DNA of 64,000 nucleotides from Sminthopsis crassicaudata (Eukaryota): positions 498,003,675 to 498,067,674 of the forward strand of contig NC_133618.1 in the NCBI RefSeq assembly GCF_048593235.1, written 5' to 3'. The notes beneath the pieces are model-generated. The model was not told the DNA's origin. It made no database searches and saw only the letters and a list, made by a program, of their open reading frames with translations. Both the position numbers and the translations under genes were made by a program. Below, piece after piece: positions 6,501 to 23,438 of this stretch (its first letter is position 1; each line of letters starts with the position of its first letter).

Positions 6501-8689
6501 CTAAAGGTCACACAGTTAGGAAGTTTCTGAGACAGGATTAGAACTCAGGGTCTTCTTACTTCCAAGTTCAGCATTTTATTACTGTAGGGAGAGGGGATAA
6601 AAAGCCAGTCCCTCATAGTACTCTGTTCCTGGATCCCCAGGAATAGGATAAAGGTTTTGAGGAGGCAATTGAGTAGCCAGAACACAGAGGAAAAGAGACT
6701 GCTGAGGGAGTTGGAAAAGGAGAAGGATAATCGGCAAAGTCTGGAGGTTGTGCTGATCAAAGTCACTTGCCACCTTCAGGACTTGCTAAAGGTGAGTATC
6801 CACACCCTTGCTCAAGATGTGGTCCATCAATACTAAGATCCAGAGGAGGGGAAATGTTCCATCAGAAGTGTATAGTTACCTTCCCATAGACTATAGATAC
6901 TCAATGAGTAAGAAATGGGATACTGAGTAATGGGCAGGAGACCCAAAGAATATGATGTGAAGACGTCCTTTAAACCAATTTACAACCACAGCTTCTCCCA
7001 GCACTCTGCCATGGACAAAGCGCTCCCACATCCTTGAATTCATTTAACTCTCACCATAAGGATGCAGAAACAGAAGGTCTGAATCCTATTCTCATCTTTG
7101 CCATTAACTCTCTGCATGGCTCTGAACAAATCATTTCATGTCTAGAATCACTGAATGCCAGAAGTGGAAGGAACCTTAGGGACTATCAAATATAGCCTCC
7201 CCATTTTGCAGATTGAGAAACTGAGTCCCCGAGAAAGGGAGGGATTCAGCCCATGTCACAAAGCATTATGCCCCACCTTTTGGCTTCAGTTTCCCCATGG
7301 GCCACAAATAAATAGCCTTTGTCTATATAGAACTGGAGGGATGCTAATCCAAGCACCCATAGTGGTAAATTGCTGTGTGTGAGATGGTTAGGTACTAAGT
7401 TTGCTGTGATACTCACTAAGACCTGTGCAGGTGGAGGAGGTGGAGAAAGGGAGCTCATTGGGCCTCCGAACATTTATCCTCCTCCTGCTCCTCGCCCCCC
7501 AGGCACGCCCTGAGAAAACTGAAGCTGGCGAAGTAGACCTGTTATTCCAGTTAGGGAAGAAAGAGATGCTGCGGCAGCTGCTGACTATGCTGAACAAGGC
7601 TGTAGTTGTGGAGCCCAGTATCCCTGAGTTTGTGCCTCCCCCAATTAAGTCTCCCTCTATCCAGTCCCTCCTGGCAAGTATCGAGGAGAGGTGAGTGATG
7701 ATCTGACCAGAGAGTCATCTTCAAGGAGGAGAGATTTAGTTTGGGTTTGGAAAATTGGGGAAGAAAGGAGTCCTTTAGGTGGGTTCCTTTTTGGGGTCCC
7801 TTCAACCCTCTCTTTCCTCTCAGTTCTCAGCAGCCTGAGCCCTCCCCTCTGTTGGAGCAACTGGCCGAGATTCAGCCTTACAGACTTGGGGACTTGGGCC
7901 TGGTGCCCCGTCCACCCTCCGTTGCAGAGGAAAACCAAAGTGCCGAAACATTAAAAAAACATAGGCTTGTTAAGGCCTTCAGCAACCCTGAGGTGAGGAC
8001 ATGAGGGAGTCAGGGTGCGGGCTGTTGTTATTGTTGGTGGTGGTCGTTGGCTCTTGAAGATGACCTTGACATCAGGGAGGGGATGCCAGGACATGCAAGT
8101 AAATTGGATTTAAGTGAGGGAGGCTGAACAAGCTCTCCAACTCACTTCTCCCCCCCAGAGCCATCTGGGTCCAGTGCAGATCAGGACAACTGGAGATGGC
8201 CCTGGATGAAGTAGGAGGGCTAACAACAAGTCTCAGTCTGACAACTACCCATTCAGTGTTTAAGACTAGATAGCAATTGAGGCAAATAATGTTCTCTTTC
8301 ACTCAGTCAAAAACAAACAAACAAACAAACCAACAACAACAACAAAACCCCAACCTCAATAAATAAATCTAAGAGGGGAAGACCCTCAGAATTTCTGGCC
8401 AAATGATTGCTATTTATCTTCAATCTGAGTCAATCAGGATCCAACAATGATCAAATGGGGCTTGGCCTGAGTGTGTGCAAGGACAAAAAGGGAGGACTCT
8501 CCCAGGAGCATCTCTCTTCTGATATATGGAAGGGATGGGATAAAGAGGGCAGAGGATGGAGCACAGACCTTTCCCTTTCCCTGAATTTTTCTTTTCTAGA
8601 TTCCAAGCCCTCGAATATTGAGCAGGGCCAAGCAGGTAAGCTTGCCAGCATTCCACTTGAACCCCAATTGGGAGGGACAGCAGGAATAG
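577..8689 (+). CDS. CFAP157: Cilia- and flagella-associated protein 157, tandem copy A (9 coding exons, 522 aa, intact)
   Basis: Exons 577-722, 1743-2014, 3367-3520, 3692-3959, 5443-5573, 6641-6791, 7503-7690, 7824-7992, 8600-8689. All GT-AG with compatible phases; total 1569 nt, no internal stop. Recognisable CFAP157 coiled-coil peptides ([49 protein letters not shown]). Synteny next to PTRH1/TTC16/TOR2A/SH2D3C. Confidence 0.93.
5205..5290. repeat. (TA)n / (CA,TA) microsatellite in CFAP157-A intron 4
   Basis: Direct reading: long atatatat run. Confidence 0.9.
6035..6345. repeat. Two-copy composite low-complexity duplication ((CTT)-rich + (ATA/ATG)-rich unit, ~130 bp)
   Basis: cttcctcacataa(g/a)aatgatgattataatt(a/g)taataatgat occurs at ~6110 and ~6232, each preceded by (g/a)tacag(t/c)tctttctta. 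Confidence 0.8.
8125..8290. mobile_element. RTE-related SINE/LINE fragment
   Basis: Reverse-complement homology to 17845-17985 (ggccatctccagt..tcctgatct / agatcagga..actggagatggcc); marsupial RTE-derived family. Confidence 0.55.

Positions 8690-23438: not shown

Follow-up and report, generated by a model that had tools for sequence, protein, structure and literature searches.

Reciprocal retention of conserved tail islands in a tandem CFAP157 gene pair of marsupials

The preservation of duplicate genes through complementary loss of their sub-elements is reportedly captured by the duplication-degeneration-complementation (DDC) model of subfunctionalisation, which is said to go back to Force and colleagues in 1999. 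For paralogues from the yeast whole-genome duplication, losses of short linear motifs have been reported. The protein CFAP157 has been described as a FOXJ1 target that interacts with CEP350 and is needed for morphogenesis of the mouse sperm flagellum (Weidemann et al. 2016, cited by PMC5487853 and PMC11914644). In the literature that was searched, these links to FOXJ1 and CEP350 came without mapping, and no function was found for any conserved island of the CFAP157 tail. A search combining CFAP157 with marsupial terms returned no CFAP157 paper among the matches listed, and the paired tail-motif pattern reported here was not found described.

Here we analysed a stretch of 64,000 nucleotides of the Sminthopsis crassicaudata genome (hereafter the window; N runs are absent from its 64 kb), which carries two tandem nine-exon CFAP157 genes, copy A and copy B, arranged head to tail on the plus strand (Table 1). 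Marsupial and placental CFAP157 share homology over their full length, PTRH1 and TTC16 as neighbours and the same tail islands, and the long N-terminal coiled coil and disordered tail predicted for a placental orthologue may be shared as well; they differ in that placentals and platypus have one gene with all islands, whereas marsupials have two with subsets, copy B having an acidic C-terminus in addition. As under DDC, both marsupial duplicates are preserved and have lost complementary sub-elements, so that the full set is found only in the pair. Unlike the classic cases, which concern cis-regulatory modules, the sub-elements are here short conserved peptide islands, and the two copies are still similar in their promoters and first introns. 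With the yeast duplicates the pair shares the asymmetric loss of conserved islands in disordered regions, yet the present case concerns one old tandem duplication in vertebrates, with clean block-wise reciprocity and wide species sampling. The reading that we prefer, with a probability of roughly 0.55, is a motif-level DDC of the CFAP157 tail between A and B, combined with some neofunctionalisation in B.

The exons of both copies matched proteins named CFAP157 from marsupials, placentals, platypus, reptiles, frogs and sturgeon. Searches of Pfam and PDB with these exons gave no model and no structure; the coiled-coil matches that appeared were noise below threshold. Exon 2, used in a word search, returned exon-sized fragments only, one of them named CFAP157-like. 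Full-length orthologues, which bear the name CFAP157 at their source, were reached by a large HMMER search. Existing annotation names the two genes CFAP157 and CFAP157-like, copy A being the 'CFAP157-like' of RefSeq marsupials. In tblastn comparisons, Sarcophilus 'CFAP157-like' (P0321, 522 aa) aligned with the window from residue 16 to residue 522, in nine pieces free of stops that are 81-100% identical, and the Sminthopsis B protein (P0305, 546 aa) over residues 7-546 in nine exons at 86-100% identity, as befits DNA of a dasyurid. When stop-to-stop pieces of 1-13500 were compared with those of 13501-24000, seven exon pairs matched with 34-62% amino-acid identity; exons 8 and 9 of A and B were paired by shared position, phase and orthologue alignment. 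At the DNA level, exons 1-4 of the two copies are 67-76% identical, and the similarity reaches from the promoter through exon 1 into intron 1. A stretch from the promoter to the first part of intron 1 aligns between 523-1046 and 14595-15144 (67% identical over 572 nt), and a 54-nt element of intron 1 (1139-1192 in A, 15175-15228 in B) is 85% identical and preceded by a pyrimidine tract and AG. This element could be a regulatory element or an alternative exon that both paralogues have retained.

A position beside an opposite-strand PTRH1 and TTC16 counts as a mark of the CFAP157 family, and the window shows it: copy A stands directly upstream of copy B, copy B adjoins a minus-strand PTRH1-like gene, and a TTC16-like gene, recognised by its TPR matches, follows beyond the PTRH1-like gene downstream of B. 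Dromiciops (L001) and Gracilinanus have these four genes in the same succession, with PTRH1 again on the minus strand, and CFAP157-TPR fusion models are present among placental proteins. Between the PTRH1-like and TPR genes, 26000-28000 is GC-rich (GC 0.60) and is likely a CpG-island promoter region. An open reading frame between A and B (10166-10561, plus strand) resembles by eye the C-terminal part of LINE-1 ORF2. In addition, an inverted similarity of 142 nt (75%) links 8071-8201 (plus strand), downstream of A exon 8, with 17984-17844 (minus strand) in B intron 2 and is probably a dispersed repeat.

Table 1 Features of the CFAP157 pair and its neighbour in the window
Feature	Positions	Strand	Basis or remark
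CFAP157 copy A, 9 coding exons, intact	577..8689	+	tblastn with Sarcophilus P0321; ATG ORF from 577
A exon 7, ends in phase 2	7503..7690	+	sequence, alignment
A exon 8, 169 nt	7824..7992	+	AG at 7822-7823, GT at 7993-7994
Islands S0 and S1 retained by A	7849..7914	+	translation, alignment, tblastn
Degenerate S2 equivalent in A, 20 residues	7915..7974	+	2/16 placental-conserved columns kept
Island S3 in A (AFSNPE; IP added by exon 9)	7975..7992	+	within-A identity 0.87
A exon 9 and stop, 29 residues	8600..8689	+	sequence, alignment
CFAP157 copy B, 9 coding exons, intact, transcribed	14664..23438	+	tblastn with Sminthopsis P0305; spliced contigs
B exon 7	22339..22520	+	junction 22520 to 22956; loose contig end matching exon 6 end
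B exon 8, 151 nt	22956..23106	+	AG before, GT after; contig borders
Altered S1 equivalent in B, 13 residues	22999..23037	+	3/12 conserved columns kept; within-B identity 0.71
Island S2 retained by B	23041..23106	+	10/16 conserved columns kept; within-B identity 0.83-0.88
S3 vestige GTATTCATCACTCCTGAA (VFITPE), first 18 nt of B intron 8	23107..23124	+	homologous to GCCTTCAGCAACCCTGAG of A, there followed by GT
B exon 9 and stop	23253..23438	+	alignment, spliced contig
B-only acidic extension, about 40 residues	23316-23435	+	past end of placental, platypus and A proteins
PTRH1-like gene, synteny anchor	23685..25256	-	Pfam Pept_tRNA_hydro, E 2e-12 and 4e-9

In both copies exon 8 begins in phase 2 and ends in phase 0, encoding 56 residues in A (7825-7992, plus strand) and 50 in B (22957-23106, plus strand). 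An earlier note on this DNA had placed a GDLGLVP motif at 7876-7908 in A and, in a B exon 8 that has lost GDLGLVP, an HIPFNP stretch from 23041. Both translations and coordinates proved exact, and both lie in true exons, that of B having contig-confirmed borders. In runs X6 and X15, which are one data set deposited twice, a 1316-nt contig joins 22520 to 22956 and 23106 to 23253 and a second contig joins exons 6 and 7; B is thus transcribed and spliced as modelled for exons 7-8-9. At position 23022, in a Thr codon of B exon 8, the contigs of X6/X15 and of X8 have C for T, which is synonymous and therefore a polymorphism. A blastp comparison of A exon 8 with B exon 8 gave no match at E<0.01, as might be expected if one copy were a pseudogene or an annotation artefact, or if the two exons were non-homologous. 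We regard this as extremely improbable in view of the nine stop-free exons in each gene, the spliced RNA-type contigs of B, the conserved orthologues in ten species for A and eight for B, the identical phases of exon 8 between homologous flanking exons and the DNA-level conservation of the 3' end of exon 8, where the B vestige at 23107-23124 is homologous to the last six codons of the A exon.

At least four or five conserved islands make up the CFAP157 tail encoded by exons 8 and 9, which we refer to as S0 (LLQQLxxI), S1 (containing GDLGLVPR), S2 (HIPxNPxD(L/I)xxLSxTTRxG), S3 (AxSxPEI) and S4 (KKFSLPEV). They were followed in an alignment of 43 full-length proteins and six exon pieces of the window, whose two copies entered searches and alignments as single exons and are represented in the tree by the proteins of other marsupials; primates were represented by gelada and aye-aye, and the human sequence was left out. 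All five islands are present in 16 placentals, including gelada, aye-aye, rat, pig, elephant and armadillo, and in platypus, the tail of which reads LLQQLSRVVHYRPGDLGLIPRP-LPPHLNPHDIALLSRTSRLG. This supports the earlier proposal, which had been drawn from the human exon, that the ancestral mammalian exon 8 carried both motifs. All platypus models with an in-frame tail correspond to one gene; P0198, considered as a second platypus gene, was rejected as another model of the same gene. Two models deviate, platypus model X2 with a tail out of frame and chimpanzee isoform X3 without the exon-8 region (P0053, P0293), the latter indicating that exon-8-less isoforms are annotated in placentals. Outside mammals, frogs and sturgeon have S1, in the form HYRxGDLGLVP, and part of S2; LSxTTRxG-like sequence occurs in frogs and turtles, and LSRSTQL in sturgeon. 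Across this alignment LSxTTRxG is the most widely conserved island.

Within marsupials, A retains S0, S1, S3 and S4, and B retains S2 and S4. The pattern recurs in every orthologue of both sets, which cover opossums (didelphids) as well as australidelphians. GDLGLVP and AFSxPEIP are kept by 10/10 A orthologues (Monodelphis, Gracilinanus, Dromiciops, Macrotis, Sarcophilus, Vombatus, Phascolarctos, Notamacropus, Trichosurus and Petaurus), none of which has the NPxD..LSxTTR block; with copy A of the window included, GDLGLVP is invariant. Conversely, (H/Y)xPFNPKDIxxLSxTTRLR is kept by 8/8 B orthologues, and none has GDLGLVP. In the window itself, permissive tblastn placed the two blocks apart, GDLGLVP in A exon 8 alone (E about 1e-7) and NPxD..LSxTTR in B exon 8 alone (E about 1e-5); HIPxNPxD(L/I)xxLSxTTR is absent from copy A, and no hidden or vestigial exon with the missing motif was found elsewhere in A or B, nothing else in the first 30 kb scoring better than E 0.03. 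The tail alignment, tblastn and the conservation within each clade thus agree with the earlier proposal that each paralogue keeps a different ancestral motif, and two tests set in advance came out in its favour: both motifs are present in the placental and platypus outgroups, and the pattern recurs in other marsupials, didelphids included. The two-motif picture itself held for the reciprocity of S1 and S2 and was too simple beyond it, as there are four or five islands, A also keeps S3, and both copies keep K-K-F-S-L-P.

Retention was quantified over alignment columns conserved in at least 75% of placentals. In exons 1-7, 168 columns were retained by both copies, 49 by A only, 46 by B only and 62 by neither, so that retention in A and B is positively associated (OR 4.6, p 1e-9), and columns kept by A only are intermingled with those kept by B only (52 runs versus 48.5 expected, z +0.7). 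The corresponding tail columns number 8 (both), 18 (A only), 12 (B only) and 17 (neither), and here single-copy columns fall into blocks (10 runs versus 15.4 expected, permutation p 0.029). Reciprocal retention in blocks is a property of the tail alone. For S0 and S1 together, 15/20 conserved columns are kept in A and 5/20 in B, and for S2 2/16 in A and 10/16 in B (Fisher p for S0+S1 versus S2 retention 2.4e-4 in A and 0.041 in B). Mean pairwise identity within the A clade is 0.78 for S0, 0.90 for S1, 0.53-0.56 for S2 and 0.87 for S3, compared with 0.80 for exons 1-7; within the B clade the values are 0.42, 0.71, 0.83-0.88 and 0.42, compared with 0.71. In each copy the retained block thus exceeds the protein average in within-clade conservation, and the lost block is lower or merely average.

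The species counts are non-independent, each loss being a single event on a stem branch, and therefore the non-overlap of the losses alone is statistically not strong: if one island were lost at random in A and two in B out of four, about half of such cases would show no overlap. This leaves room for an independent turnover of motifs in a disordered, fast-evolving tail without any partition, in which B would be the generalist orthologue minus a dispensable S1, much like the sauropsids, A a derived specialist, perhaps narrower in its tissue role, that no longer needs S2, and the complementarity coincidental. In line with this, turtles and geckos, for each of which only one CFAP157 turned up, have LSxTTRxG and are without GDLGLVPR, indicating that the loss of S1 does not require a paralogue, and B combines the LSxTTRxG shared with frogs, turtles and, in part, sturgeon with the ancestral place beside PTRH1. 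Run X5, discussed below, which contains words of A and no B contig, would also fit. However, S1 is conserved from sturgeon to placentals and invariant in A (identity 0.90), no ancestral island is missing from both marsupial copies, and outside the tail the block pattern is not seen. We therefore consider such a coincidence possible but on the whole unlikely, and favour the motif-level DDC, for which, at the level of sequence, the two copies are both retained, the ancestor had all elements and the losses are complementary.

A careful phylogenetic tree recovered the A, B and placental clades with 100/100 support each, therians with 100/98, and A and B as sisters with 85/78. Both the A and the B clade contain didelphids and australidelphians. 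Approximately equal stems lead to A (0.46) and B (0.55), compared with 0.31 for placentals, so that neither copy looks like an untouched parent, which again argues against independent turnover. In AU tests, neither a grouping of B with placentals (p 0.53) nor one of A with placentals (p 0.21) was rejected. Together, tree and AU tests indicate that the duplication predates crown marsupials and lies close to the therian split. A duplication on the marsupial stem would be the most parsimonious placement; the duplication may also have occurred before the therian split, with copy A then lost in placentals, and both groupings left by the AU tests are compatible with this. As the conservation of their orthologues indicates, both copies have stayed intact through some 80 million years of purifying selection.

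The lost islands have changed in different ways. In B, the S1 position has kept its length and was altered by substitutions only; its replacement, PYRLSGLSxxFRP, is itself conserved (pairwise identity 0.71), and this conservation as a new sequence points to changed function rather than decay. The AxSxPE codons of S3 are skipped in B through an upstream splice donor (AAG/GTA) that arose via a GCC-to-GTA change and is used by the RNA-type contig, and at the old donor position the window still has GT (23125-23126) and Dromiciops has GC (L001, about 20190). The Trichosurus B protein model retains the six skipped codons, making alternative donor use possible in some species, and the Gracilinanus model runs on into the intron; donor choice at B exon 8 may thus differ between species or isoforms. 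At its C-terminus, B has acquired an acidic tail that is conserved among australidelphian B orthologues. This extension of about 40 residues indicates that neofunctionalisation is mixed in. The subfunctionalisation signature claimed in the earlier note was thus supported as regards complementary retention, and has to be qualified by this new extension and by the rewritten yet conserved S1 of B. Subfunctionalisation of A and B as such is consistent with the data and unproven. In A, the S2 equivalent may have been lost via a double frameshift, as other frames of A exon 8 show a weak likeness of VHPPLQ to xHIPPNPQ, but substitutions together with a three-residue deletion account for the loss equally well.

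Several small runs contain 0.34 of the words of 7400-8800 in copy A, the exon fraction of which is 0.32; this word share, together with RefSeq-type models in ten species, is no more than suggestive of transcription of A. In run X5, words of A exons 7-9 (share 0.34) occur and no B contig of exons 7-9, and in run X6 both are found. The two runs may differ in expression, or the contig filter may have left a gap.

An AF2 model of polar-bear CFAP157, built on a 32-row alignment, places helices at residues 39-237, 250-382 and 395-416, followed by residues 417-524 without regular structure and with pLDDT mostly below 50 (35-50). On this prediction for a placental orthologue, rather than for the window proteins, CFAP157 is modelled as a long coiled coil with a disordered tail, which fits a tail built of short linear motifs. 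It also makes conceivable an obligate A/B heteromer, whose paired coiled coils would carry one S1, one S2 and one S3, and whose complementary losses would lock the pair by constructive neutral evolution. Long helices typical of coiled coils are predicted over residues 39-416, A and B strongly agree in the columns that they retain in the coiled-coil exons, and run X6/X15 has the spliced B contig along with A words at 0.34; on the other side, the coiled-coil exons of A and B are only 34-62% identical, and we consider an obligate heteromer improbable.

Under the preferred motif-level DDC, CFAP157 would have been duplicated in tandem near the marsupial-placental split, before crown marsupials, and the tail islands would have been lost complementarily on the stem lineages. 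Copy A has kept S0/S1 and S3, and its S2 would have decayed. Copy B has kept S2, and would have had its S1 rewritten by point substitutions, dropped S3 once the GCC-to-GTA change made the upstream splice donor, and gained its acidic tail by read-through of the old stop. The most likely consequence would be that the partners of the ancestral tail were divided between A and B, or come together again in a coiled-coil heteromer of the two. More tentatively, S1 (GDLGLVPR) and S2 (NPxD..LSxTTR) might be independent docking motifs for different partners, with A and B acting in different steps of flagellum or cilium formation, in different cell types, or in a locked heteromer; we hold this specific assignment to be doubtful.

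Nothing established is overturned by a CFAP157 pair with split motifs, which is a clean case, in vertebrates, of motifs partitioned block by block between tandem duplicates. The marsupial pair points to four or five discrete islands of deep conservation and provides natural variants that are without one or another island and have been under selection for ~80 million years, from which peptides and tail swaps can be taken for partner tests. If the docking-motif reading is true, the pair would be a natural separation-of-function experiment.
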